Of a stretch of 19,920 nt of DNA, positions 1-19,920 are shown piece after piece. Each line of letters starts with the position of its first letter. The stretch's first letter is position 1. A program made the position numbers and the translations under genes. The stretch comes from Bugula neritina (Eukaryota; Animalia; Bryozoa), in assembly GCA_964035545.1 (NCBI GenBank), contig CAXIUT010000293.1:1-19920 (forward strand), given 5' to 3'. The notes under the pieces are model-generated. The model saw only the letters and a program-made list of their open reading frames with translations. It searched no databases and had not been told where the DNA came from.

Positions 1-428
1 TTATTGCGGAATAGTCTAAAAGTAACTGATATATCGCATAAAGAATAAAGGATATTCCAGAGCTAGAAGGAGGTGAAGGGCTGATTACTATTTTTATTGT
101 TTTTGATTGTTTAAGAGAGGAGTTAATAGTTTTATTAGAACTGGAAGTTGGCTGTACCTTAGCCGCAGCATTTTGATTAATTTTTGGTGAAAGAGGTGTG
201 AGTTGGTAGCCATAGGTAGGAAGATATTTGGTTTTATTTTAGATTAGCTTGATTTGATAGTTTAGTTAGATATTTTTATAGAGATTGCGACCATTATGTG
301 TATTGTTGGGTGGTTGTTATGATGTTAATTGATTAGTTTTTGGAGAGGAAGGTTTGTAGTTTGGAGAGAGGGTGTTTTTATTGTTTTGAGGATGAGGATG
401 AAATAGAGAGTGATTAATTGTTGCCCAT
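1..428 (-). CDS. 5' part of a ciliate-type protein kinase-like (possibly pseudokinase) protein with N-myristoylation motif; runs off the window
   Basis: ATG at 428, no TGA down to base 1 with TAR=Glu: MGNNESLS...YLWLPTHTSF...FEENYELLSETIK...PFTSFELWNILYSLCDI. MGxxxS start; the ELWxILYSL segment resembles kinase helix alpha-E. Confidence 0.6.
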
Positions 429-607: not shown

Positions 608-3107
608 TCATTGTGATTCTACTAGCACTAACTTTTCTTTCTCAATTTTATTGCACTATTATTCTTGCTGGCCATATTCATCGACCCATTTCTTCCAAAT
701 TTTCTTCTCAATAGCAATATCCTTGGATTAATTTGACTAGAACCAGCCAATTACTTCTTCAGCTTTCATCTTTTTTATCTTCAAAGAACGACACAGCCTG
801 TTAGTAGCTATTTGCTTTCGATTGTGATCTTTATGCCAATCTGAAACTGATAAGTTCATGATCTATCTAGAAAAAAGAATACGTATGAAGTAGAGGGACA
901 AGATGTTTTTTAAGCAAGTGAAATTATTTAATCAGCTTTGTGTTTTCTGCTTGTTTTGAGGTAAAATAAATATTTGAGACCTGGATATGTATTGGTTAGA
1001 CAGGGTGTGACTATTTCTGAATATTATAACAGTCCTTGAACAAGAATATTAAATTTATTTTTCATGAAGGTGATGTATTATGGAGTTTACAGGTTATATT
1101 TCCATTGATTTTGCCACTATGTATGACAAGAGTGAATGAGATTGTCAATAAAAGTTTATATTGATTCATTTTAAATACAATTAATATTATTGCTAAACTA
1201 TTTGAGTTCTTATCCATTGAAGTTGAGACTATTGTTGCTGAAAAAGAAAATGAAGGGTTAAATAAGTATTTTATTCATTATGATGTTTTTGGTAAAAGTT
1301 TATTAATTTTTTATTAAATTTTATAAGATATTTTTGTTGAAGAAGTTTGAAGGAAGAAATTAACTGGAATAGTTGATGAGTTATTTATAAGCATTTCTAT
1401 TAAAAATATTTTTGAGGTATTATTATGTATTAAGAGTTTGAATAATCATTGTTATTGAGTCAATAGTTAATTATTTGATAATTTTTTTTTGTTATTTATA
1501 AATCAACTGCTGTTTATTTATTGAGTATAAACTATTATACTAGAGGACTAAGAATATCAATAATAAAAAACTAATATCGTTTATTTTATACTATTTGAGA
1601 CAATAAAAAAGATATATTTTTATTATTAGGATTATTGCAACACTATTTCAAGAGAGATTGTTTATTGAATTATATTTTTTGGATTAAGTTGATAAGATTG
1701 TTTCTTAGAATATAAGTTATTACTGAATTATTGATAATTTTGTTGATGATTTATTAGTTATTGCATTATTAGTTTGATTTTTTTATTTAGGTTTTTAGTT
1801 ATTTTAATTGTTATTGATAAATATATAAGATGTTGTCGTATTGGTCGAGTTGAAGTGATTTTTATAACTATATTTTATGGCTTTTTGCCAGTTATTGGAT
1901 TATGTTTGATTACTCATGTGATGATAATTTAAATATTTATTGTTTTGCTATAGCTAATAAAGATGATTATTGTTTGCTTAATAAGATGGGTTAAGGATGT
2001 TAGAAAAGTATGTTATTTTAAATATATAATTCTTAATATAGTTAATTTTAGGTATATTGAAGGACTAAGGATCTATTTTGTTACTAGCGATAGAAAGAGA
2101 TATAGAAATGATTATGAAAGTGAGTGATGTTGAAGTTATTAGCTTCTAGGATAATTGGCTTGAATGTTGTGAATTGAGGTTGGTCTGATATAATTTATAC
2201 TTATTCTTTTACCAGTAAAGCATTTTTATTTTGTTTGTAAATGATAAACATTTCAAGATGAGTACTTTATATTTGTTTGGATATTTATCTTTAATTTATT
2301 AATAGGATGGATGATAGTTAAAGTTACTTAGAAATATTGTTTTTGAAAACTTCATCTTATTGAATCAGTTTAATAGTTGAATTTAGGATGTTAGTTTTAA
2401 CTTCTATTAGATGTACCATGACTCTGTTTTATCTGATTGTTAATATTTTGATATAATCTTTGACTGATGGTTGTATAATTGGTATGATTTAGATTGATTT
2501 GAAGTGTTCTTTAGTTTGTTGATAAAACCAACTCAAAAGTCCTTTAGATTGATCGATATCTTTAAGTTTTGTTAATGTCAATTGATATTTATTGTTTTCA
2601 TATGTCACTACTATCAGATAGAACTAGTCATTTTAAGTATAAGCTACATATAGTTCATTTTATCCAAAGTCAATAGCTTTGGAGATATATCTGATTTCAT
2701 CTTGATTTAACTTGATATTGGTTGAGGCTATAAGTTATAAATTTGATTTGATATTGCCTTCTGAGTTGATTTTGCATCGATAAAGATTGATTTAATTTCT
2801 ATTTGAGGTTAGAATTTTGTAAATTCTTTGTTTTTATGTGAAGGTCAGACAATTTTTATTGAGGAGATAATTCAACTTGAGAGTCTAAATAGATAGATTG
2901 GTACATGGCCAGTTAGTTGAGTGAATTAGGGATTGAAAAAGTAGAGGATTGCTTATTTTGAAGGCTGAATATGGAGAAGATATTTTGAATTTGAGAGGTC
3001 GATTGTTGATTTTTAGTCTAACTTGTAATGAAGGTACCATTAAGAGTATCATGGATGATTTATTTGAGGGTTTGGTGAGTCTGATGGGGTAAGAAATGAT
3101 GCGCCAT
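608..3107 (-). CDS. Large hypothetical protein (~810 aa; beta-rich N half, helical C half) with one unresolved frame switch near 1460-1490 (could be two genes)
   Basis: ATG 3107; 20-nt GTA..TAG introns at 3018-3037, 2885-2904 and 863-882 join long TGA-free frames; terminal TGA 608-610. A 1-nt discontinuity lies near the T9 run at 1482-1490. Confidence 0.6.
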
Positions 3108-3499
3108 TTTTGTGATTAATTGAGAATTATAATAAGATGATATATTATTAGATATTTAAGTCAGAATAGTCAAATAAGGCAAAATTAAAGCTATCTTAAC
3201 TATTTGTATTAAAAAAGAACTTTTAGTAGCATCTATCTATAAAATTAGAACATTTTGCTATTAAATTACATTATTCTAATATTGATTCCTCTAAATTTCA
3301 TTTAATCTATTTAATTTTCCTTCATTATTATAGCCATAACTATTTTCCTTATCTGAAGATGGCTATTCTCCTTTTAAATAAACAAAATCAGTAGTTGATT
3401 ATGAATAGTTTTTAAATGATGTAAAAGCTATTATTATATGTGTTGAGCTCACTAATAAAATTAAGATTACTACTGTATATTGAATCATTGCCTCTTATT

Positions 3500-4157
3500 T
3501 CATTGGTAGTACATTCTGCTGAAAAGTAACATGTTGTATTGATATGCAGCGTTTTAGAAATTTGTATTGAAGTCGATGCATGTTGAAGGACTTCCTGAAT
3601 TCATTACTGGTCTAAACCCTTCCTAAACCTTCACCTACGCATCTACTTGCTTCTATCGCTATTCTACCATCTATGCCTTCATCGTTGTCTTTTGTTATGG
3701 TTCTATGAGGTTTTCAAGAGTTTATGATGTGTTTTTGATCTGGGTAGGAGAGAGAGTACTTGAGTGGAGAGGAGGTCTAGTTCATAGTTGCGTTGTCCTA
3801 TTTGGTCACAAAAATATTCTATGAGTGAGTTTAGGTGTTGAGATGATGATTTTAGTTTTCTTTGGAAGAGGCTGAATATAATGTAGTTTACCTGAAAAGT
3901 GGTTGATGAGAACAATGCTTTGATAATTTGAGTTAAAATTGTTGTTTATCAAATAGCATTGAAAGCAGTCTTTAAATAGACTTATTTGAGTAAGAAGATG
4001 TATAGTTTTTGAATGATTTTAGTTTAATATTATTATTTTTGTTTATTTTTTTTAGTTTTAGGTATGATGTTTTGAGAATTAGTTTTATTTATCTATTATT
4101 CGGGTTGCAGAAGTAACAGGAAGGTTGAGGATTTTATTTATTGGTTAGGACTTGCAT
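3500..4157 (-). CDS. Hypothetical protein; 3' end uncertain (may extend to ~3160 through further tiny introns)
   Basis: ATG 4157 (MQVLTNKENPQPSCYFCNP...); 20-nt introns at 3872-3891 and 3740-3759 restore the frame; first in-frame TGA 3500-3502. Confidence 0.55.
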
Positions 4158-4534
4158 TTGTTTTTGGTTGTAACTTTAAAATTATAATGTTATTGATTAG
4201 TTATTATGAAAAGTCAATCAAAATAACAACCTATTTATGTTTCTGACTAAACAAAGGTCCAATAAACAACAATAAAGCTTTATCCATTTATTTTTTATCT
4301 TATAATATAATCATACCACTAGAATATTTTTTATACTTTCTTTGATATTCTGAAAATTGAAATAATAAGCATTCAATGTTTTATTACTTGATTCATATCT
4401 ATTTGCTTAGCTACATCATAATACTCAAGTATTTTATCTTTAAATCAAATTAAATAAAATACTTTATGAATAACAAATTTAATATTGACTTTACTTTTAT
4501 AAAATTAATATTCATAATTATATTAGGAATATCA

Positions 4535-6448
4535 TCAATTAGAAGGACTGCTACTAGTCGATTTACTTGACTGGTTGCTTGTTGCATTATTATCGAAAAA
4601 GTCACTTTCACAGTTTGTTTTGACATGCATGACATATTTGTAGTACTTTTTGTACTTGTGTTCTTCACAACGAGATTTCTTGGTTCTGGGCAAGGGACTA
4701 TCAGGTTTGGTCCATTGTTTGCAACTACATTATTTGTATTAACGATGATCAGTGCATTATTTCAAAATTTATTTTGATTTTTATGATATTTTAGACTTCT
4801 ATTCTTCTTTTTTAGGTGGTGGGTTGTCTTTCATGTACTTCTAGGTTTGATAACTATAATATATGACCCAATTGATTTGAATATCTAAGGCTTCTGCAAT
4901 AACTTTAGCATAGTTATTTATATTTTTTATTCCATTTTCAATACAATATTTAGCTATTTTCATAATAACTTCCATCTTAGTCATAAGCATTCTTTTTTAT
5001 TAAACTTTATCTTCTTTTGAGACATCTTTGTTGGTATTTAGTAATCTTGATGATTGAGATTCTGTTTCTATTTAATATGAATCATTAATTTTTTTGCCTC
5101 TATATCTTGCTTCTAACCTTATGTCCACGCATTTTATATTTTTACGAGTTATCAAGGCCAGAAGACCAACTAGCTGTTTGGCTAAATTTTCATCATAGAC
5201 GATTTCTTAGTTATTGTTGCCAGAATTATTATCTTCTGTATTATAAGCGCTGCAATCTTCTTATTCCTTGACCTTATCATTGTTTTATTTATTATCTTTG
5301 TTTTATTTATCCTATTTAACCTATTTATTTTCTTTGTTTTATTTATTATCTTTATCCTATTTATCCTATTTATCCTATTTATCCTATTTATCCTATTTAT
5401 CCTATTTATCCTATTTATCCTATTTATCCTATTTATTATCTTTGTTTTATTTACTATATTAACTATTAGAATGAGAAGTTGAGCTACTCCTTGAACTTCT
5501 TGAAGTTGAACTACTTTTTGAATTACTTGAAGTTGAGCTATCTTAACTTTATGTCTTTTGTTTAATATGAGAAGAACTAGATTGACTTATTTCACTTTGA
5601 CTTTCTTTTTAAGAGCTTTAATTTTCTAGAGAATCTTCACTCTTTTCTTAACTTCTCGAATTTTAATCTTTTTAAGAGTGGCTTTTATGACTTCTAGATT
5701 ATTTGCTATTATCCTAGCTTTGAGAATTTTAACTTTAATCTTAACTTTAAGGAAATTTGTAGCCAGATTTATATCTTTTAGTTTCTAGTTGAAGAAGTCT
5801 TTAATATGGGAAACTATTTTTATTTTATTAGTTTTGTTCTATTTCAATTGGGTCTATTTATATTTGCATATCTTAAGTGCTACAGTATTTCATTGTGAAG
5901 CCTTTCCTGTGTTAGGCAATACATCCAGGATTTCCTTTGTCTTAATTTTGTTGTAAGTTTCTTTATCCATCGAAAAGAAGTCTACTGTTTTCTGATTCAA
6001 TAGTGGTAGCTGTTCCAGAGATGGAAGTAGATTCATCAAAAATGTGACTTTAGTTCAAAGTCCATGACTTAGTTGTTACTGTTTCCCCTGTTTCAGGAAT
6101 AACAAAGGAGTCTTCTACCTTCACAGACATCTCAGGTTATCTTGAAAGGAATATTCCTAGAAGAGTCCCTGTTATGATGAATGAGATAATAACAAAAACT
6201 CCTGCTGCAATACAAAGTCTTTTCTTTAAAGTTGTTTTTTGATTTGGTTTTTGGTTTGATTTAACTTCCTCTTCTTGAGTTGGATTCTCTTTCCGATCTA
6301 TCTATATGTCTCCAAGAATAGAGTTTGGGTCTTGATTTACTTCTTTAGAATCAAATTAATTGCATTCAATATGAGATTCTGATTCAGCTTATGAATGTCC
6401 TTGGATTTTAGCATTAGTTGAAGAAGGATTATCTGCCATGCTTTTCAT
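4535..6448 (-). CDS. Intronless 637-aa predicted single-pass (type II) membrane protein with Ser/Glu-rich and Lys-Glu-Asp repeat region
   Basis: ATG 6448 to TGA 4535-4537, 1914 nt with no internal TGA; hydrophobic segment LCIAAGVFVIISFIITGTLLGIFL after a basic KKR patch. Confidence 0.75.
5351..5431. repeat. Coding 9-bp tandem repeat (TTTATCCTA)x9 with degenerate flanks ~5281-5452; encodes (Lys-Glu-Asp)n on the minus strand
   Basis: Nine perfect copies counted; minus strand reads AAA TAG GAT in the frame of the 4535-6448 CDS. Confidence 0.9.
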
Positions 6449-6525
6449 TGAAAATTTTAAATTATATCAGTTAAATTAGTTGTCTATTTATAAGTTAATT
6501 CATCAAAGTCAAGAGACTTTTATTC

Positions 6526-6923: not shown

Positions 6924-8761
6924 ATGAAGTAGTATCATGATGGTCCCATCGAATGTACAAACATTATTCTAACTCAGATGATAAGAGATCATGTACAGAT
7001 ATTATCTGTTTGATCATCTTTATTTTATTGTCAGTTTTCATGTTAGCTGTTGGCATCTATGCCTGGACTCATCCAAATGGTAATTTCTCTAAACTTACCA
7101 CTGCATACGACCCTGACGGAAAAGGATGTGGAGTCGATTACCCTGATTTTCCATATATCTACTTTGCTTCTCCTCATGCCAATGTACTTATACATAGATA
7201 TAGTCTCTATGGGTAACAGTTTGTGTCAGAAAATGTCCAAGTAAGACAGATACTGTGCTTGAGTGTCAGCCTAATAGTGTGGTTACAAGTTGTCAAGCCA
7301 AATCTGACTCAGATAACACAAAAACTGTTCAAATCTATGATTCATCTGTTAGTATATCTTCAACTATTAAGCTGCAAATACTCTCTGTCTAGCTACATCA
7401 TAGACTCTACAGTAAACACTTGCGCCAGCTACAAGTGGCTATGGAACTAAGATTGCTGGTGTGATGAATGGATGGGTACTGATATTGCTTGCAATTCCTA
7501 TCGCCATTGTAATCGCTCTGCTAATCATGTGCCTGATTCGTTGTTTTGCTGGCTGTTTTATTTATGTTTTGATTATTCTATGTATCCTAGTATTGGTCGT
7601 ATTTGGAATTTATGTTTGGACTCAACCTGTAGGAGGAGCACTTGGACAAACTTCATCATTATTTTCAAATAATACAGGAAGAACCATAGTATCAATAATT
7701 TGCTTTTTACTAGCTCTTGCTATAGCTATCTTTTTCTGTTGCTTTAAGAGTAGAATAGCATTGGCTTCAAAAATTGTTGAGGTAGCAGCTGTATTTGTTA
7801 GTAAAAACTGTTATATAGTATTGATACCATTACTAATGTTCTTTATCACTTTGGTCTTCCTTTGTCTATGGATTCTAGAAATACTTGGATACTATTCATT
7901 GGGAACTCCTTCACATGAGAAGCATCAATATCCTTATCAGCACTTCTAACTGTCTGGATCAATCTATGCTCTTGGAGCTCTACATGTTTTCTACTTATTA
8001 TGGGTAGTATTCTTCTTGATTCATACAAGCGATTTCCTCATTTGTGGAACAGCTGCTAGTTGGTACTATAATCGTGACTCTCCTTACTGTTAAACTTCTC
8101 ATCGATATACAGGCAAGCATATGGGGTCTGTGGCTATGGGATCATTCTTCCTTGCTTTGATTGGGTTCATTAAATTTTTGTATACTATGTTAGCTCCTGA
8201 TGAAAATACAGAGCATACAGGTTTTATGTATTACTTAAGAAAATGTTGTGACTGTCTGTGTTGTCTGTGTATCGGTGCCTTGTTTGAATGGTTTAATGCT
8301 GGTGCTTATACTTGGATTAACATGGCTGGAGATAGTTACTGTACTTCAGGTATTAATTCTGCTACTTTGAGAGCAAAGAATCTTGCTTCAACTTCAGTTA
8401 TGGCTATCCTCGAAGTGGTACAATATTTTGTATTTAGGTCTTTTCCATCTTAATCAGAATTGGAATTACACTCTTAACTTGTTTCATCATCTATATGATA
8501 GTACAAAATGTTGGATCCTATAAAGATAAAATTACTGATTCCTCTTTACTGCTTGTAGTGGTAGGTCTTTTGGCTTTTGCTGTGAGTTGCTTTTTTATTT
8601 CGGTCTATTCTGAGTCAATGGAAGCTCTATATACAACCTATTTGATGGATGTAGATGCTGGAATGGATGGTGGAAGTTGTCCTGAAGAATTAAGGGATTT
8701 TATCCACTAGGCTCAACAAGAAGAACATATGATTCCTGTTGAAGAGAAAAGAAGCGATTGA
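6924..8761 (+). CDS. Choline transporter-like protein (CTL/SLC44 family)
   Basis: GP..KRSCTDIICL N-terminal motif, DPDGKGCG, VCVRKCP, multiple TM helices, HMGSVAMGSF, AYTWINMAGDSYCTSG. Introns 6955-6977 (23 nt), 7184-7203, 7352-7371, 8418-8437 (20 nt each); TGA 8759-8761. Confidence 0.92.
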
Positions 8762-8853
8762 TGATGCACATATTCATAAATATTTTTTATTTTAAAAGTA
8801 GTTTTATGCTCATTAATTTTCGTAGAAAATATAAAATTTGTATAATTTTTGAG

Positions 8854-9579
8854 ATGTAGCTTTAACTACGTGAGTTGATTGCTCAAAAAGACTAAATGGA
8901 AAAAGAACTGATGAATCTAACATAACAAATTTAACTATTGGATGAGATAAAACAGTTTAATAAAAACTTGACTGATGCTTAAGGTTTTCCTCGATAAGAT
9001 ATTGATTTTGGAGAACTTGCTAACTATAGATCTCTCAAAAAACGTAAAGCATAACTCAATAATGATCATTTAGCATTGATGAAGACAATCTAAGGTAAAC
9101 TTTATTCATTGCATGTCTCATTGCCCCAACAGGAAAATGTGATAAGTTAAACTCATGAGAGTAAAAATACTCCTTTGATTATGAAAAAAATGGAGAAAGA
9201 GGTTGAAAAAGTCTAAAAGAAGGCTGGAACTATTGACTATTTAACTCCTTTTGCTAAAATTTCTTTGGTGTCAGAGGGAAGTCCAGCTGAAAGAGCTGGT
9301 TTGAAGGTCGGGGATTTGTTAAGTGAGTTTGGCTAAATCAACATATATTCTTTAGACTGGCTTAAACAGATAGCTGGGGCAGTCAAGGAGTAAGTTCCTA
9401 TTGGAATAATAATTATGCGAGTGGTGGAAGCATAAGAAAAGAGTGGAAGTTCTGTTTTTAGACTGAAAGATGGGAACAATTATGAAAAAATTAAGATATA
9501 ATTGACTCCAAGAAGTTGGTAAGGCCGTGGGCTATTGGGATGCAAAATTGATCCAATTGATTCAAACTCTAAAAAATGA
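8854..9579 (+). CDS. PSMD9: 26S proteasome assembly chaperone Nas2/p27 (N-terminal helical domain plus PDZ)
   Basis: LTDA(E)GFPR(E)DID, LNNDH..LMKTI(E)..L..LH, PFAKISLVSEGSPAERAGLKVGD, LTPRSW(E)GRGLLGC; intronless, 241 aa. Confidence 0.92.
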
Positions 9580-9615
9580 TTATCTCATATTGTTTCTTAT
9601 TTTTTTATTAATTGA

Positions 9616-10206
9616 ATGAAAGGTCACAAGTAAAGTAAAGAAAAAAATATTGTAAATGTTGTCGACAGTGTCACAGGGTAGATTAGGATCAAAAAGAAGA
9701 GACGTAGAGTCGTGGGCAGTCCCCTATCAGGATAGGACTAGTCTTTTGAGCCTGATTTTAATCAGTATAAAAAGGTGGGATTACCATTAGATATGACTCG
9801 GGTGACTCAGGGCGGATGGGGGCTTGAAGAAAACAGAATCTACTTAAAGTTTCTTGAGAAATACAAGAAGGATTTTGGCAGCTAGATTTCACGGAGAAAG
9901 GTTAAAATTTTTAATTTACTCTCAAAGGCTCTGAGAAAAAGAACACCTGACCAGTGTCGCAGCCACCACCAAAAACTTCAGAACAAATTTAACAATAATA
10001 CTGAAGATATTATTGTTTATATCCGAGATAAGATTCTAGAGGCAAACAGAGGTGACCAAGACCGTGTTATGAGTGAGAAGGACCTTCAAGGTGTGAAAAT
10101 AACAGCGACTGGCACGTTAGATTTATCAGAGATTGAGAAGAGGTTTGTGAAGTAAGAGGAATAAACTTTCTTCTTTATCGACTTGGCAGAGGTCGGGTAC
10201 TGGTGA
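9616..10206 (+). CDS. Single-repeat Myb/SANT-like DNA-binding protein (SHAQKY-like, ciliate type)
   Basis: GGWGLEENRIYLKFL...RRKVKIFNLLSKALRKRTPDQCRSHHQK; basic NLS-like KKKRRR; 196 aa, TGA 10204-10206. Confidence 0.82.
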
Positions 10207-10368
10207 CTGATTGTTCAGGATTTAGAACATTTTTGAATATATTCTTTTATTAACTTTGAAAAGGGAAAAAAAATGAAACTTAGTATTATAGTAAAGTTAA
10301 GGAGTTAAAAATAGAAGATATGAATCAATCTTTAGTTTCTCAAGTTGCTGATAGAATAAGAACAGAAA

Positions 10369-11349
10369 TCAATTTTAGGTTTCTTTTGGTTCTTCTTCTT
10401 CTAATATAGATATTTTATAGTTGTCATGTAACTATATAATTTCCCAGCCGTCTTCATCCTCTCTTTTATCAATTTATAACCAGTCTTCATTTATCACTTT
10501 TTTTATACTCGTCATAAATTCTTCCTAGGCCTTACCTCCTGTCCTTAAAGCAGGACCTAGAAGTCCAATACATTCTTCATAAGCTGATTTAAGCTATTCT
10601 GATTTCTTTTGGGTGTTAGTTAGAGCTTCTTGAATTTTTTCTTCTAACTATTAAGATTTTTTTTATTTTGTGTACTTTGAGATAAACTACGAGAAGGCAA
10701 AGGAAGCTAGCATTGATATGGGATTGAGTTTGATTGCCATAGAACTTGCTTGGATGATGAATGTTTTAGTGAAAAGTTTTTAAGCAATGTATGCAAAGCC
10801 TTTGTTGACAATACTGCTGGAAACTTTATCTTTTACCTTTTCTTTAACTTTTTACCCGACTTACGATGATTTCTCTCCTATTATATTGGGTAATAATTCT
10901 TATCTAATTTGATAGTTTTTATTAGATGGAAATAAATGTTCACAATATGGTAGTTTAGTAATGTCTTAAAGCAGCTATTGATAAAAAGAATGAAGTTGTA
11001 GCATGTTATTATATTGATCAATGATTTGGTTGTTTACTTCAACTGGCTGAGGTATTAGAGGTTGAGGAGTATTGTTGGCTTTGATAAATTTTTCAATTGT
11101 TTTTTCGATAAATTGCTTTAATAGACAACACTATGATTGAAGGTAGAATTGGAAGTTGTTTTTTTAGATTTATTTCTGATATTAGGGAAGAGATTAAAGC
11201 TGTTTAAATGCATATTTGCGCCAAAGAGAGTAAGTATTAGGGAGAATAGGGAAGGATGTGCTATCAGGATTGTATTCTTAAACAAAAAATCCAAGTGTCT
11301 TGTTAACTATTTTAGTTAGAGGTTCTTCTTAGTTCTTTTATATTTTCAT
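10369..11349 (-). CDS. Hypothetical 326-aa helical protein with acidic C-terminus carrying two W-x-x-I motifs
   Basis: ATG 11349 to TGA 10369-10371, open with TAR=Glu; tail reads INEDWLEIDKREDEDGWEIIEL. Confidence 0.7.
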
Positions 11350-11364
11350 TGAACTATATATCAA

Positions 11365-12649
11365 TCATATACTACCAAATATTAAACTTAACCAAGAATA
11401 TTTATTTAATTTTACCAGGGGTTGGGGTTGGGGTTGGGGTTGGGGTTGGGGTTGGGGTTGGGGTTGGGGTTGGGGTTGGGGATTAATCTTTAATACCACA
11501 AATGCTGGCAGGATTGGATATAATAACCTTCGATAGCCTACTTTTCCAGTTGTTGTATTAACATTGAGTTAATTTTTCTTAGCAAAGGAAAACATATTTG
11601 CCATTGTTTCTGACTTTTACATAAAAATCAACTTGATTATCACTATGTAACTAAAAAACAAGGTTCGAAGAAAATGGGCTGCTTCCTTCACAGTTAAGAT
11701 CGCTTGATGTACCTTTACTGTAGAGTTATTAGATACATTTAGCAGATGATATGTTAAGGTTATTTTGAGCTGATATGAAATCTACTTAATTTGCACTGAT
11801 TGTTAGCCATTTTCCTGAACTTTGGTTTTTAGTAGGAGGGTCAAATGATTTTAAAATTTGAGAGAAAGTAAAAGTATTGTATGCTTTTGAAAGGTTGTAG
11901 GTTAAGGTAAAATGATTGTACCAATTGTAAAGATGTTCCATATTTGAGAGATCTTTGGATGTAAATTATTGAGGTAAAGGTCTACCCAAGTAGCGATCAA
12001 CTCTAATTGTATCATAAAGTTCTGAAAGTTTTTTTAAGTCCATTGTTTCTGAATCAATTTTGAATATCTTTGCCATAGATTCCAAGAAAGGATCATATAA
12101 TATGTCTATCCTGGCATATTCTTATTTTTGTTGTTAAATATTTTTATTTATCTATTGTTTTTCATTTGGACATGACTAGATAAGTTCACTACTATAGCTA
12201 ACAGTAGATATCAATTGTCCTTTAGGTAATGCAAAATGTTCTTAATTTGTATCATTTTTATAGTGATAGGGTGGTATCCTGTATTTCGGTTAGGCTGGAT
12301 TGAGAATTTGTCCATTTCCTAGTGGATACATTCCATATAGATTTGTAAGTGATGTTTGGATTGTTTTGTTTTGAGTGGTTGTGATGATTTGAATCCTTTC
12401 TTTGTTAAATGTTGAAGGTAGAAATGATAGTTAGTCGATATAATACTTTTTGAAGAGCTTTCCTAGAGATTACTGTTGCCTTAATCCAACAGGAGTTAGA
12501 TCATTCCATCGAGTTTTTGTCTGGTTTCCATCATACAGATCATTTGTATGAAACCTTGCTCCTGGAGCTAATAGAACAACAACTGACTGTAGTTTAGTTT
12601 ATGCAAAAATAGCTAGTAAAGCAATGATAAAGATCGCTATTTTTTACAT
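11365..12649 (-). CDS. Secreted histidine acid phosphatase (branch 2) homologue with degenerate active site; 3' end interrupted by a telomeric tract
   Basis: Signal peptide MEKIAIFIIALLAIFA; LTPVGLRQQ.SLG, LYGMYPLG.G, PFSSNLVF(E)LH, FYVKVRNNG. RHGxR reads APGAR and HD reads NE. TGA 11365-11367 is in frame only if 61 or 64 nt of the tract (or a single base) are removed. Confidence 0.8.
11418..11481 (+). repeat. Interstitial telomeric tract (GGGGTT)10 GGGG, 64 nt
   Basis: Perfect C4A2/G4T2 (Tetrahymena-type) repeat with unique sequence on both sides. Confidence 0.95.
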
Positions 12650-12688
12650 CAATTATTATAAAAATAAAAATAGCAATAGTTCAATTAA

Positions 12689-13275
12689 ATGGCTCAATAA
12701 TCCGAATACACTAGCATTAATTTTCTTTCTTCTGTAACCTTTTTATAACTCAGTTAAAATCAAATAAGAGTAAACTGTTAAGAGCCACTTCATTTGATGC
12801 CGATTTCAAGACGATGGATTTCGTATTAAATAGTCCAAAAGGAAATGTTAAAAAAAATATTAGCTTTCAGAAGAATGTCGATTGTTAAATAGCGAAAAGA
12901 TTTATACTTGCGATTGTTGGTAAGTATTAGGGACAGTAAGGGGCAGAAAAAAGGTGGGAAGGATTTATGGAAAATGTTTAATCAGGAAATTTTTAGAAAT
13001 TTGTAGAATAAATTAGTCATGAAGCACAGGAAAACAAAGCTGATGAAGTAAAACCCAATCCTGAGAGCAATCATCTGTTAAAATAAACATTCAAATAATA
13101 AAAAGGGGAGAAGAAGAAGTTGACTAGAATATATTCATCTAAGGCGTTGGATAAGGCTAAAGTTCAGTAGAAAGAATAGAAAAAATCAATAAGTTATAAA
13201 GATTCAATTAAGAAGGATTTGATGGAAATAAGAGATATTTTATATGCCGGATAAAAGTTTATCAGGTAGGCTTGA
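12689..13275 (+). CDS. Hypothetical charged protein (~188 aa)
   Basis: ATG 12689, 20-nt intron 12734-12753 (gtaacctttttataactcag), open to TGA 13273-13275. Confidence 0.65.
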
Positions 13276-13553
13276 CTGTTGATTAGTATATCGATAATAT
13301 TTAATATAGTTTAGAAATGAATAATTCGAATAATATTGAAGTTGAGAATTGGCATATTTTTGATCTTTGAATAAGGCGGGAGAGAGCATAGCGTTGATAA
13401 TAATAAGTAAATAGAATAATCAATCAAGATTAATTAGCAATAGACTTCTTATTGAGATATTTTTGATAATATTTAGTAGATAATATATGTTGATTTAATG
13501 TTCTTTTACTAAGATAGTTTTATACAAAGTGCGCGTGGTGTTAAAAACTAATA

Positions 13554-14131
13554 ATGGCAAATTTAGCGCCCAAGGATCTTTCAGAATTAATCGAGCATTA
13601 ATAGTAATCTTACTCTAGCTCTCTTTAAAAGGCAAGATCTGTTGGAGTCAAATCGTAGGAGTTGACTCCTCCTAAAAGATCGTATTGTCCTTAAAACTAT
13701 AATGCAACCATAAAAAAATAGATGATGCCAAGCGATAAAATTCTGTTCTATAAGAGTAAGCCCTATCATTTGGATTATTTGAATTCTATAACTATTTGTA
13801 TTTTGTATCTGATTTAGATGAGGGACGTTTGCAGAATTAATTGACTATTTCCAACAATCGTACAAGTCGTAGACGAGGTTGTCACTGTGTTAAATCTAAA
13901 TGTCAGTCAAAATATTGTTAGTGTTTTGGTAAGGGATTGGCGTGTGGAACTGATTGCTAGTGCGTAGACTGTCATAATTTGGAATAGAGAGATTAAGTTG
14001 TACAGCCTGAATAAAAAGGATGTAAATGTTCTAAATCTATGTGTTTGAAGAACTATTGCGAATGTTATCAGAGAGGAGAGCATTGTGGGAAGAAGTGTCA
14101 GTGTACTAATTGTAAGAATGTTGGTTTATGA
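13554..14131 (+). CDS. Tesmin/TSO1/LIN54-like CRC (twin CXC) domain protein
   Basis: GCHCVKSKCQSKYC(E)CFGKGLACGTDC(E)CVDCHN and GCKCSKSMCLKNYCECYQRGEHCGKKCQCTNCKN; 20-nt intron 13798-13817; TGA 14129-14131. Confidence 0.88.
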
Positions 14132-14156
14132 TTTATATGTATACTTATTGATAAAA

Positions 14157-15930
14157 TCATTTAGAGGAGGGTAAGTTTGGATAGAATGGTTTTGAGTGGG
14201 TCTTTAAGTAGTTTTATATCTTTTCGGAAAGAAGACTGCCTCTTGCTCTGGCTTTTTTTAATCTTTTTACGAATGTTTGTTTTATTTATGTTTACTAGGA
14301 TATTTATGGATTATCTTACTTTTTATTTGTAGTTTCAGTTAGATTTTTATTGTTTGAAGGTATTCTTGATGTGTTTCCTTCTTGAAATGAAGATATACTT
14401 CTTGTGTTTCCAGTACTTGTTTATTTATGATCTTCTTCATTAGTATTTTTAATTTAAAGAAGGCGTTAATTTTGATTTTTAAGAAATTAACTGAGTTATT
14501 TGATACAAGATAAAAGCTAATCATTCTGACCTTATTGACGATTAATACTTTCCAGAATAGCTTTTATAAGTTTTTTGTTTTATTTCAATTAATTTTATTA
14601 CGATTATTATAAGGGTTAAGACTAAATTTATTGAATATGTTTATTATTAAGTTATGGAGAAATAATTCTTGAAGATCTTTAACCGATAATATTTTATGTT
14701 AATTCTGATTGATTATTATTTTATTATTTTTATATTCTTGAATGTTTAAAAAATTAATTTTATGATTAATTTAATGATTACTATTGAAGATTATTGATTT
14801 TATATTATTTTGAGGGACTAATATATTTTTATTTATGTTTAGATTCAACAGTATTAGTGAGTTATTTACTTTGTTTATTTATATATCTTAATTTGATTAA
14901 AGTTTAATACTTAAGTGATTTTATATCTTTTTATTTCGAAGTATTTATATGATTTTATTATGCTTTAGCTATTTATTTTAGTTAATAATTAGATTTATTA
15001 TTATTTGATAGCTATTATTTTTATTTATTTAAATCAATATATTGATCTAAATGTACCATACATTTTGAAAGTTATTATTTTATTTATTTTATTGATTTTT
15101 GCCTATTTTCTGTATCAATATCACAACTTTGTTTATCAACAATTTAATTTATTACTTATTATTGACTTTTATTTCTTATTTAAGGTTATTTTGAACGATC
15201 TTTTGATTTACTTTTAGTATTGTCTTGTTATGATGTCTTATATTGTATGTTTCTACTTTTTATAACCTTTTATTTGATTCCTTGAGGATGACTTGCTTCT
15301 TTCATATTATTATCTTTATTTAATTCTATATCATTAATTTTATTTAACTTTTTATATCTACTTTTATCACTTCTACTATTAATATTTCGACTATTTTTAT
15401 TATTTATGTTTTAGAAATCAATAGTTCTATGTGTTTTAGTATTGGACTTATTATTTTTATTATTTTATGTTACTTTTTGTGATTGTTTGAGGTAGGGTAG
15501 ATTTGAAAAAATAATTACTTTTAGGAAAATAATTTATTTAGTGCTTTTTTATTTTTATTTATTGTTATTTTGATTGATTATTTTGAATTTTAGCTTTGTA
15601 TTTTGATTTTAGGTCTTTCAGGTTGTTGATTATTTATTCGCATGTATTTATGTACTTTTATGTGACTAATTATTATCGCTATGTGTAATACCTTTGACTT
15701 GGTTGGTTGATTTGATGGCTAACTGGTTCTATCGTTGGATATGGAGATATTTATGGAGAATTATAGATTGGTTTTTTGTAGTAATTATGAGGCAGAGAAA
15801 CAGAACGTTGCTATTTACGTTCATTATATGATTGTTTATATTTGATTTGCTAGTCAAGCATTTGTTTGTATATATGTTGTTTTCTTGTTTTTTAAGCTCG
15901 AAAGTATTAATTATCTGATAACTATAGCAT
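14157..15930 (-). CDS. Low-complexity Asn/Lys/Glu-rich coiled-coil protein; internal exon structure not resolved (one or two genes)
   Basis: ATG 15930 (MLELSDNEYFRAEKTRKQHIYKQMLDEQIKYK...); plausible last exon ...KPFYPNLPSSK TGA 14157-14159. Start and end frames differ, so an intron or indel is needed. Confidence 0.5.
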
Positions 15931-16185
15931 TGCCAATATTTTATTGTTTATATTTATATTTAAAACTCATTATCATATCATCAAACTTAATTAATAACTC
16001 TTATTCTTTTAAAAAACAGCTTTTTAGAAGAAATTACCCAAAATAATTTTAAAACAATAATTAGTTGATTGATATTCATTGAAATATATTTGAAATTATA
16101 AATTTTATAAGATTAATGATAAAAAGTATGTAAATTCCTATTTAAAATGCTAATAATATAATAATAACTCTATAAGAATTACTTA

Positions 16186-17768
16186 ATGTCCTCTTTCATT
16201 TTGATCCTCTTGTTTGCAGTCCCTCTTCTGGGTGACAATGCTCCTGTGGATATAATAAATGCTCGATAGTATATTGGAGATTACCAAACATCTCAAGAGA
16301 TGGTACTTCAGTTACGATAAAGAATACTTTTGACTATCTAGAAGGACGAGAAGGCAGGTTAGTCGCCTTCTTCTATGGTCAATCGAATCGAGATGTGATC
16401 AATAGCCTCGATATCTTCGTCATGGATCCAAGATATTAAGATGGTCGGATGGTTCTCATCGAGGTCAAGGAAATAATCGATATTGGTGATGGTAGTGAAT
16501 GGAATAATACTGATCATCATATTACTTATACTACTATATGGAAAGAACGCATCTAGGATACTTGTAATTGCTAAATAAATTAGATTAAGTTGATCATGTA
16601 TCGACGAGTATTGTCTTTAGTGGTTTGGATACTGAAGACTACGAGGATGTTTCGATTGATATCCATATGACAGGTACTAATTTTGAGTTTAAGTCTAGCC
16701 TTCAGTACTATGACCAGGTACATATCATCCAATGAAGATATTATCAACGCTGACATACAGTTTGTTTATCAGTTTTGTGGTGGCTATTCAAATTTATGCT
16801 GGATATGTATTGGTTCGTATTATGGATGCTCCTAACTTTGTTTTTAGCGGGAAGATGTCATTATTGACTTTATCTTTATGCAATATTGAAGACTTTTCTC
16901 AAACTATGAGTCATATTCAATATATCATGGGTTCTGAGGTATATAAATGGTTATATTCAGAGTGGTTATTTGTTTTTCATCATGCCTGCCTTGGCCTATA
17001 TCGTGTTATTTATTATATTCGATATGAAAATGTTATTTTTGGTGTGGAGAAGTCATAACCTTAGAAATATTGAAAATCCTCAGTTATTGAGAAAAAAATT
17101 GACATCTTTCTATATTCAATTTTGTACTTTGTTTTTAATTTAGACCTAGGACTATTCTTATATCTAACTCTTATATACTTCTTTAGTAATGATTAGTGGA
17201 TGATTATCTTGAGGAATATGATTTTGATTCCTCAGATTATACATAACGTTCGAATGGGAAATAATCCTGGTTTCAATTCTTTCTATATTTTTGGATTTAT
17301 TGGAACTAGATTGCTCATTCCATTCTATTAAAGACTATGTCCTTAGAATAGATTTCATTTGAGTCCTAATATTACCTTAATTTCAATAGTTCTATCACTT
17401 TATATCCTTGAAGTATTTATATTCTTAGTTAGGTGGTGCTTTTGTACTTACAGTCAAGATTAGGTTCAAGGTTTTTTGTACCCAAACGATTTCAACCAAA
17501 CTACTTCAATTATAAACAGAAACTAAAGCAAGATGACACTAATAGAGATTGTTAATGCACAATATGTTTGCAAAATATTTTCTAGGAACCACGTACAACT
17601 ATTAATGCTTCTGATTTGGATGACAGTTTAGTGAATAGTTCTTTACAGCAAGAAGTACCAGTGATGACTACTCCATGCAAGCATCATTTTCATGAGGAGT
17701 GTTTATCACAGTGGATTGAAGTTAAGTTGGAGTGTCCTACTTGTCGTAGTCCTTTGCCTCCTGTTTGA
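16186..17768 (+). CDS. Transmembrane RING-H2 E3 ubiquitin ligase, Tul1/Dsc1/FLY-like
   Basis: Signal peptide, lumenal domain, TM bundle with LIPQIIHN, RLLIPFY(E)RLCP(E)N, LQSRLGSRFFVP, then CTIC...TPCKHHFHEECLSQWIEVKLECPTCRSPLPPV. Introns 16303-16322, 16564-16583, 16718-16737, 16939-16960, 17124-17143, 17413-17432. Confidence 0.9.
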
Positions 17769-17912
17769 TCAATTATAGAGGTTTGATTGTGTGATTTAGG
17801 CAAATATTTAATACATTAGTTAATTTAGAGTTAGAATATTTGAGTTGTGAAATCGTTTTTTAAAAGAATTAACTCAGCTTAGCTTTCGATTATAAAATTT
17901 AGAATTATTTAG

Positions 17913-19529
17913 ATGAAGATAGAACATAACAATACATCAATGAAATTTAAGGCTATTGGGAAACGTATAGTAAGCAAATCTACTCGTCGTTCTGTCTAAA
18001 CAAGTCTTTTGCGCCCTTAATTACGAGCATTTCGCTTAGACTATTAAGAAGTCAACCCATCTGATAAATCAGGAAAATAATTTTCTTCTTCATCGTAAAA
18101 AAATAACATGTACAAGTATTCAGCTATTGAAGATACTCGTGTGAGTCGTTTCACTCATCACCAGATCTTATTAGTTGAAAAGAATATTTTGGTACTTGCT
18201 TTACTTGTTATCTTCTTGGGAATGATGAAAATTGAGGCTGATTTGAACTATCCTGAAGGGAACATCAGTTCTAATTTAATGACTGTCATCAGTTGTACGA
18301 CATGTATGTTAAGTAAGTATTGATTTATTTTAGTTTTATTGGCTTTTTTAAGGAAAATACTAGTATTACAGTTATAAATTGATCAGAGGATGATATATGT
18401 GAGAAAAGATGAAAGGAGCGATTGTCGAAGTGGTCTTTGGAAGGTGATCAGAGATCGTCGAAGAGTCATCTAATTGTTCCTTGAGATACTTCTCATTTTA
18501 CCTCATCCTATTACATTTTTTCAGGGAGTTAAATTTTCAATGTAAAATGAAAATAAAGGAGTTCATTTCATGTATTCTGTGAACGATATGTTAAGTGTTT
18601 TGATGATGGGTAAAATATACTTAGTTTTTCGTTCTCTGGTGGCTTTAACAATCTATTCTTCTCCTCGAGCGATTAGATTATGTAGTTATAATAATATCTA
18701 ACACAGTACTTTTTTTATTCTGAAATGTATTCAGCAGGAATATCCTTTAGGTTTCACAACTATTCTTTCACTAGTAACTATGTTCATCTTTGCTTTTGGG
18801 TTTAGAGTAACTGAAGGGAATCTCTACCATTTAAATCCTGATCTTATCAGCAAAACAGGATTCTAAGACTATACTACATGTATTTGGTATACTTTTATAA
18901 CTATGACTTCAATTGGGTATGGAGATTATATACCTATAACTGAAATAGGTCGTCTGTTAGCTATGATTATTGCTATTTTCGGTGTATTTTTAAATTCATT
19001 TTTGGTTGTAGCTTTAACTGAATATCTCAAAATGAAAACTGGATAAATCAGATCACATACAACACTTAATCGTTTAATTTAAGAGAAAAAAATATATTAG
19101 GAATCTGCTGGTGTTTTAGCTGAGACTATTGGAGTCACACAGATGTTGTCATAAAATAAATTGGATCCTCTGATATTGAAAAGAATGCGACCTGTTTTCG
19201 ATGATTTAAAGAAGAAAATTGATAAAAGTAAAGCTCAAAGTCGTTTGATTAAGGCTATTTTACCTCAATAGAATAAAACTTAGTTAATGATTCACTAATT
19301 TGAGTTGGTTAAAGACAATTTTAGGGAGATTTATAACAAACAACATAAGATCAAACAAAAAATATCAAAAATAGAGAATTTAAAGGGTGATCAGATGAAG
19401 AAAGTCAGGCAGAGTTTCATAAAAGAGGTTTTTTCGATAATTGGCAAGGATATGTGTGATTTAATAAGTAATTATATTAATATTTTTGATTATTTATATT
19501 AATACAACTTCTATGATGATAATATCTGA
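17913..19529 (+). CDS. 6-TM potassium channel of the ciliate-expanded SK-like (small-conductance Ca-activated-like) family
   Basis: LEILLILPHP, pore WYTFITMTSIGYGDYIPITEIGR, C-terminal coiled region; 21-nt intron 18313-18333; TGA 19527-19529. Confidence 0.88.
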
Positions 19530-19545
19530 TGATGATAGTTATAAT

Positions 19546-19844
19546 ATGCCAGATAGGGGTTGGGGTTGGGGTTGGGGTTGGGGTTGGGGTTGGGGTTGGG
19601 GTTGGGGTTGGGGTTGGGGTTGGGGTTGGGGTTGGGGTTGGGGTTGGGCGATAAGAGATGGATAAAAAAACGAGGCCAGAAGAAAAGTTAATGTAAGTAA
19701 TTTAGAGGGAATATAATCGATGGGCCCAGATTTCTTAGATAGAATCGATACTTCATTTAATGACTCAATGATCAAAGAAAAATCACAGACTTTAAAGGAG
19801 TCGCGTTTTAATCGAATGAGAATTCATATTTATAGGAAATAAAA
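19546..19844 (+). CDS. 5' fragment of a gene, interrupted in frame by one telomeric tract and cut by the terminal tract
   Basis: ATG 19546 (or 19513): MPDR[(GW)15]AIRDGEKNEARRKVNVSNLEGIESMGPDFLDRIDTSFNDSMIKEKSQTLKESRFNRMRIHIYRKEK, with no TGA before the terminal repeats. Confidence 0.45.
19556..19648 (+). repeat. Interstitial telomeric tract (GGGGTT)15 GGG, 93 nt
   Basis: Perfect repeat, followed by 196 nt of unique sequence before the terminal tract. Confidence 0.95.
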
Positions 19845-19920
19845 GGGGTTGGGGTTGGGGGTTGGGGTTGGGGTTGGGGTTGGGGTTGGGGTTGGGGTTG
19901 GGGTTGGGGTTGGGGTTGGG
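19845..19920 (+). repeat. Terminal telomeric tract (GGGGTT)n, probable macronuclear chromosome end
   Basis: G-rich strand runs 5'->3' to the end of the window; one G5 variant at 19857-19861. Confidence 0.9.

Follow-up and report, generated by a model that had tools for sequence, protein, structure and literature searches.

Does a telomeric repeat in the interior of an assembled chromosome record an event in the cell or an event during assembly? The stretch of DNA analyzed here (the window) is the entire 19.9-kb contig C302, which we interpret below as the macronuclear minichromosome of a ciliate. The 216-Mb assembly, from a different organism, contains some 300 small contigs of this kind. The window uses a ciliate code in which UAA and UAG are read as Glu and TGA is the sole stop. 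The window carries three G4T2 tracts. Here we argue, with a probability of roughly 0.78, that telomere-ended reads of shorter chromosome isoforms were stitched into the layout of this contig and that each telomere tail took the place of native sequence of the same length.

Results

Matching with the G4T2 12-mer gave 33 matches in the window versus 0 expected and confirmed the perfect tracts, G rich on the + strand, that had been reported to begin at 11418, 19556, and 19845. Internal tract 1 (11418 to 11481, + strand) is 64 nt long, or 10.7 units, and internal tract 2 (19556 to 19648, + strand) is 93 nt long, or 15.5 units; the repeats of the internal tracts are 100% perfect. Tract 3 (19845 to 19920, + strand, 76 nt) is the telomere at the contig end, with an extra G at about 19857 and the end phase ...TTGGG. 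The 196-nt stretch between the last two tracts (19649 to 19844) holds no convincing gene and would be subtelomeric DNA of the longest isoform only. An A directly precedes each of the three tracts, and the + strand of the window holds no C4A2, so that head-to-head CCCCAA repeats are indeed lacking. The original prediction also placed all three tracts inside reading frames. This description was not confirmed, as tract 2 lies past stop codons, tract 3 is the chromosome end, and open frames are ubiquitous: because TGA is the only stop, nearly every frame contains long ones.

Ciliate germlines carry telomere-like blocks at transposon ends, and the tracts might be inherited interstitial repeats, such as remnants of Tel-1/TBE-type germline transposon ends that survived an imprecise excision. 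No element flanked by telomere-like blocks, whether paired or inverted, was found in the window, where all tracts are co-oriented and no C4A2 is present on the + strand. The internal tracts are also perfect, unlike old inherited ones, and diverged samples of the same species, judged by contig spacing and sampled junction words, lack the tract. An inherited origin is therefore hardly credible.

The genes beside the tracts were informative. Tract 1 borders a phosphatase-like gene (11482 to 12649, − strand, Met at 12649; weak His_Phos_2 match on a fragment) at its very 3′ end. A homologue search, among records from which near-identical ones seem to be excluded, returned relatives that were all at most 84% identical, an exact look-up of three window ORFs gave no match on record, and a metagenome scan with a 27-mer of the right flank of site 1 gave no match. 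Metagenome contigs L036, L039, and L040 are about 66% identical and differ from the window in the order of genes around site 1; they were usable for comparison of the phosphatase C terminus only. Only four codons separate the conserved SICG motif from tract 1, whereas the orthologues continue after SICG for 22 codons (L039) or 16 codons (L040) before the stop. The last 12 to 18 codons and the stop are thus absent, a shortfall of 35 to 56 nt that would fit in the 64-nt tract. It had been suggested that collapsing the tract to GGG gives a sensible protein, but this yields a tail of about 55 to 56 amino acids after SICG, unlike the 16- to 22-residue tails of the orthologues. At site 2, a K+ channel gene (18390 to 19535, + strand; Ion_trans_2, with the selectivity filter TSIGYGD) is complete before the tract. 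It stops with an in-frame TGA TGA TGA at 19527 to 19535, and tract 2 begins 20 nt further on.

Other contigs of the set show similar damage. On contig C231, the SDHA gene has no in-frame Met between the upstream TGA and the conserved YTVVDH...GAGGAG region, and a 94-nt tract occupies the expected place of the start and presequence. On C10, one gene reaches its tract without a stop. Both the window and C10 are unique within the assembly, and therefore no tract-free copy of either is available there. On C14, a complete-looking tRNA gene, tRNA-like and with a probable intron, begins 1 nt past the tract; ARAGORN called no tRNA beside this tract. If the tract had replaced native sequence, the adjoining tRNA would be a coincidence, and we count this against an artefact.

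For comparison across the sites we used Logan contigs (k = 31 de Bruijn contigs) of three public runs, X1, X2, and X3, from two studies. These contigs are about 1% diverged from the window, and the runs contain 66 to 74% of the words from the 3 kb around the junction. From window position 11411 to 11491 there are exactly 79 letters between in X2 record 12, in X3 record 18, and in the window alike; the spacing was measured with letters 11412 to 11490 masked, and the content is deduced from the k-mer rule. In X1, two contigs overhang site 1 by 61 and 48 letters, which equals 79 given the k − 1 overlap of 30. In a k = 31 de Bruijn contig, a pure hexamer repeat is limited to 36 nt, and 64 nt is not possible. 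Equal spacing and this limit together indicate that the runs carry unique sequence of equal length at site 1. Four 31-mers sampled from the junction between the tract and the right flank were not found in any indexed run (0/4). A 10,395-nt X3 contig, colinear with the window from 9163, ends at about 19558 (computed), which is at site 2.

These data bear directly on whether the tracts are real interstitial scars, left where a break was extended by telomerase and rejoined so that single molecules run from flank through tract to flank. Such scars would agree with perfect, telomere-length tracts that start after A, as at true ends, and with a pattern that recurs about 270 to 295 times in small contigs. 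Insertion would nevertheless leave tract-free copies shorter by 60 or 90 nt, whereas the three runs show the same spacing as the window (79 versus 79 letters), which would be impossible after a 60-nt insertion at site 1. Flank, tract, and flank were not found together in the runs, as the four sampled junction words are absent and k = 31 contigs cross site 1. Genes beside the tracts that lack a start or a stop also argue against insertion. Extension by telomerase at a GGG seed followed by religation, as originally envisaged, is thus unsupported, and we regard scars as very improbable. About as improbable is that macronuclear molecules truly carry internal G4T2 through recombination or rejoining of capped isoforms that replaced about 60 to 90 nt. 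If true, this would mean an unknown route for telomere-capped ends back into chromosomes.

Across the assembly, the internal tracts resemble telomeres in several respects. They end in TTGGG in 266 cases, in TTGG in 18, and in TTG in 11 (raw counts), so that TTGGG makes up about 90% of some 295. All true contig termini examined (3 right and 6 left) are in the TTGGG phase as well, which suggests that each internal tract is a complete molecule end. Internal tracts measure 57 to 94 nt compared to 56 to 105 nt for terminal telomeres, and they start with GGGGTT after A or T, as terminal telomeres do. In length, start, and terminal phase they therefore have the properties of true ends, as expected of alternative telomere addition sites. 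The sequences preceding 20 telomere junctions revealed no conserved motif; the reported ATGAWTATYA at −49/−50 was unsupported in this sample. The 15-bp Cbs of Tetrahymena had 0 matches in the 216 Mb, an assembly without the germline of the present ciliate. The Tetrahymena Cbs is germline only.

Orientation was strongly biased, with 228 tracts forward and 38 reverse along the contigs (86% forward). As contig direction should be arbitrary, this dependence on the output direction points to an algorithmic origin. The original prediction had asked for such a genome-wide count by orientation, and the bias has no biological reason under insertion and rejoining. Two points count against an artefact: the larger contigs C41, C66, and C105 have tracts in both orientations, and a miniasm-type layout would be expected to retain an overhang that is C rich when read along the output, yet G-rich tracts predominate.

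Discussion

Our results suggest that the two internal tracts are most likely absent from real DNA and are markers of real alternative chromosome ends. In the cell, the chromosome would occur in nested isoforms whose right ends fall at 11417, 19555, and 19844, situated just past gene ends and each capped by about 60 to 100 nt of G4T2. During contig building, a telomere-ended read of a shorter isoform would enter the layout or consensus, and the next read would be placed by position, so that the unmatched telomere tail overwrites an equal length of native sequence. Tract 1 would then be the tail of the isoform ending at 11417, lying over 64 nt of native sequence, and tract 2 would be the tail of the isoform ending at 19555. 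Since tails overwrite native letters, the internal tracts would be in silico substitutions and not DNA insertions. The spacing and k-mer argument and the missing gene ends point to such an equal-length substitution. The observations themselves are the equal spacing, the absent junction words, the missing gene ends, the uniform end phase, and the orientation bias; from these we infer the exact assembler step and the existence of molecules truly ending at 11417. The case for an artefact builds on the k = 31 contig construction, only four sampled words, and the logic of the gene ends. The original prediction had offered, as a second possibility, heterogeneous ends merged by the assembler. This essentially fits, except that the sites are just outside genes and that the tract replaces sequence instead of adding to it.

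Several telomere addition sites per chromosome, giving nested shorter isoforms, are known in Oxytricha (Swart 2013, PMC3558436; Lindblad 2019, PMC6937825). As proposed here, the addition sites lie between genes, the isoforms share sequence with the longer form, and assembly pipelines merge or mask them. Whereas Oxytricha has single-gene nanochromosomes and G4T4 telomeres, the present ciliate has a peritrich-type code (UAR = Glu), multigene chromosomes of 10 to 25 kb, and about 60 to 100 nt of G4T2, and its isoforms are proposed from assembled contigs. In the nematode Oscheius tipulae, two telomere addition sites give long- and short-form chromosome ends, and artificial contig-end sequence backed by no reads was described (PMC8022731). 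There too, a mixture of molecules that end or continue at an internal site confuses the assembler. This system differs in its germline/soma elimination, its TTAGGC repeat, and the resolution of internal sites by read mapping.

In Oxytricha, telomeres embedded within corrected long reads were handled as chimeras (PMC6937825), and non-terminal repeats in reads or contigs were regarded as artefacts and filtered out. It is unlikely that library or base-calling chimeras (ligation, back-to-back reads, or template switching during amplification) made the tract-bearing molecules in vitro. Every tract finishes exactly like a molecule end, and as every strand ends 5′ to 3′ in G4T2, chimeras would yield co-oriented tracts. 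They would be expected to join unrelated pieces, whereas the flanks here are neighbours at native spacing in independent contigs. Resumption exactly 64 nt downstream would also be unexpected, and the third piece would measure only 272 nt. True-neighbour flanks and a tract that replaces sequence point rather to stitching in the layout or consensus.

What our best reading leaves as a real feature is the addition of telomeres at alternative sites just beyond the ends of genes, which is a known phenomenon; in the open-access literature we found nothing specific to it in the present ciliate lineage. The roughly 270 to 295 internal tracts in the small contigs are probably of the same origin and should not be taken as biology. 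Each would hide 57 to 94 nt of true sequence, often a gene start or stop, so that neighbouring gene models are damaged. At the same time, the tracts may show where telomeres are alternatively added in a ciliate that has been little studied and that combines UAR = Glu with multigene minichromosomes.

Results

The window carries three (GGGGTT)n tracts: tract 1 at 11418-11481 (64 nt, 100% perfect), tract 2 at 19556-19648 (93 nt, 100% perfect) and tract 3 at 19845-19920 (76 nt, one extra G), which reaches the contig end. As the original prediction stated, all are G-rich on the + strand with an A before each, and the absence of head-to-head CCCCAA repeats was confirmed, as no C4A2 was found on the + strand of the window. 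The telomere 12-mer has 33 matches in the window versus 0 expected. No telomere is present at the left contig end (window 1-60), so part of the chromosome is probably missing there. The idea that the tracts lie within coding frames did not hold. With TGA as the sole stop, open frames of 80 to 600 codons occur in nearly every window frame, so that being in frame has no weight, and any whole-hexamer insertion also preserves the frame. Tract 2 lies outside a gene, starting 20 nt after the stops (TGA TGA TGA, 19527-19535) of a K+ channel gene (one fragment matches Ion_trans_2 with E = 3e-14), and tract 3 marks where the chromosome ends. A phosphatase-like gene on the minus strand (weak Pfam His_Phos_2 match on one piece) meets tract 1 with its 3' end. 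Tandem repeats with 9/18/36-nt and 27-nt units lie at 5274-5540, within a long minus-strand open frame (4538-6466).

The window sequence is present in three public studies, whose samples are about 1% different from the window and hence not the same data; in the covering runs X1 to X3, 66 to 74% of the words of the 3 kb around tract 1 are present. Logan contigs of four runs were aligned to window 8500-14400, and spacing was taken from the record coordinates around the masked interval 11412-11490. X2 record 12 holds window 11213-11411 at positions 1-202 and 11491-13043 at positions 282-1834, and X3 record 18 (10,395 nt) holds 9163-11411 at positions 1-2249 and 11491-14400 at positions 2329-5237. 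Thus, 79 letters separate 11411 from 11491 in both records, as in the window. In X1, one contig extends 61 letters past 11411 and the next extends 48 past 11491, which gives 79 with a k-1 overlap of 30. After a 60-nt insertion, tract-free samples would be expected to have 19 letters here, not 79. A k=31 de Bruijn contig, using each word once, should hold at most 36 nt of pure hexamer repeat, which tract 1 would exceed. Because the spacing is equal and such contigs are unable to hold the tract, the X1 to X3 samples must, on these alignments, have unique sequence of equal length at 11418-11481. None of four sampled 31-mers from the junction of tract 1 with its right flank was found in any indexed run, a search that is weak alone and points in the same direction.

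Three genes adjoining tracts lack one end: the window phosphatase, SDHA on C231 and a gene on C10, both small contigs of the same assembly. The orthologues of the phosphatase in two related-ciliate metagenome contigs, L039 and L040 (about 66% DNA identity), have 22 and 16 codons, respectively, from the conserved SICG motif to TGA, and the window gene has only 4 codons (13 nt) between SICG and tract 1. The absent 35 to 56 nt, stop included, could fit inside the 64-nt tract. Collapsing the tract had been thought to give a sensible protein, but the resulting tail of about 55 to 56 residues resembles neither orthologue. On C231, the tract lies directly upstream of the conserved SDHA N terminus (YTVVDH...GAGGAG), with no in-frame Met between an upstream TGA and the domain. 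The stretch of about 31 codons (94 nt) covered by the tract is where the start codon and the presequence belong. The C10 gene enters its tract before any stop. Since genes beside tracts have lost their ends, the tracts appear to overwrite native sequence; the actual sites of telomere addition would lie just outside the genes. At the position where histidine acid phosphatases have RHGxRxP, the phosphatase-like protein (region 12473-12598, minus strand) and its two orthologues show PGARFH / PGARYH / PAAGYH; the protein may therefore be catalytically inactive.

The assembly comprises 216 Mb in 321 contigs, the biggest being 16 to 36 Mb; the window is the entire contig C302. Arrays of (CCCCAAA)n, 5 to 10 kb or more, occur at the left ends of large contigs C2, C3 and C6 (L021, L022 and L008). 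C3 and C6 begin directly with the array, and on C2 an A/T-rich repeat precedes it. The large genome thus appears to have TTTGGGG telomeres. The small contigs are about 15 to 25 kb and AT-rich. They come from a different organism than the big chromosomes, since SDHA of the large genome (C1) is intron-rich without in-frame UAR, C2, C3 and C6 carry (CCCCAAA)n at their left ends, and window DNA and C10 have no match elsewhere in the assembly. In SDHA on small contig C231 (L024/L025, C231:16781-20985), UAA/UAG codons occupy conserved sites. Five of them could be compared with the large-genome copy: three lie opposite Glu, one opposite Asn and one opposite Ala, with none opposite Gln. This alignment indicates a peritrich-type genetic code. 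The Tetrahymena breakage signal, in the form queried, was absent from the assembly.

Internal G4T2 tracts of 57 to 94 nt also occur on C10, C11, C14 and C231, in the same length range as terminal telomeres (56 to 105 nt). A genome-wide pattern matching each internal tract end once gave 228 forward and 38 reverse matches (86% forward), with about 1 in 10 of the matches listed being variants within tracts and not true ends. Raw counts of end phases were 266 for ...TTGGG, 18 for ...TTGG and 11 for ...TTG. The terminal telomeres observed all finish ...TTGGG or start CCCAACCC. Because the phases agree, the internal tracts are complete molecule ends; neither extension with microhomology rejoining nor a majority consensus would be expected to give this exact phase. 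A tRNA-like gene, probably interrupted by a long intron, starts 1 nt past an internal tract on C14 (C14:18553-18655; L012:8553-8655). Its acceptor is GACACTG...CAGTGTC, followed by a T-run, and ARAGORN made no tRNA call there. A long tandem array with a unit of roughly 60 to 70 nt directly follows the C11 tract (L003:5310-5700).

Discussion

The original prediction proposed that telomerase extends breaks whose ends are then religated, leaving intragenic scars. The equal spacing, the missing junction words, the lost gene ends and the preserved terminal phase leave this process unsupported. Instead, the chromosome most likely exists as nested isoforms with right ends at 19844, 19555 and, putatively, 11417. 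A short-isoform read ending in its telomere would have been admitted to the layout, as overlap rules allow short unmatched overhangs, and the next read would then be added by position, so that the telomere tail takes the place of native sequence of equal length. Contig orientation is biologically meaningless, and the forward bias therefore fits a directional stitching step. The forward rule is not absolute, as larger contigs C41, C66 and C105 carry both orientations, and from a miniasm-type layout we would have expected C-rich, not G-rich, tracts in the output direction.

Nested isoforms and internal sites of telomere addition are well documented for Oxytricha, where assemblies mask isoforms and corrected reads with embedded telomeres were filtered out as chimeras (PMC6937825). 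Random chimeras do not suit the window tracts, as the flanks are true neighbors at native spacing. For Oscheius tipulae, read mapping sorted out both the two addition sites at each chromosome end and artificial sequence made by the assembler (PMC8022731).

Genes for a choline transporter, the phosphatase, DUF2921 and the K+ channel are common to the window (9558-16135) and related contigs L036, L039 and L040 (ENA metagenome assemblies). Window 9558-14196 is missing from L036, and 12700-16135 is missing from L039 and L040. As the shared genes have different neighbors, gene order evidently changes fast on these small chromosomes. The X3 contig is colinear from 9163 with a projected end at about 19558, consistent with a real branch at tract 2. 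The most plausible reading of the tracts is that they are artefacts of assembly, placed where the chromosome has real alternative ends.
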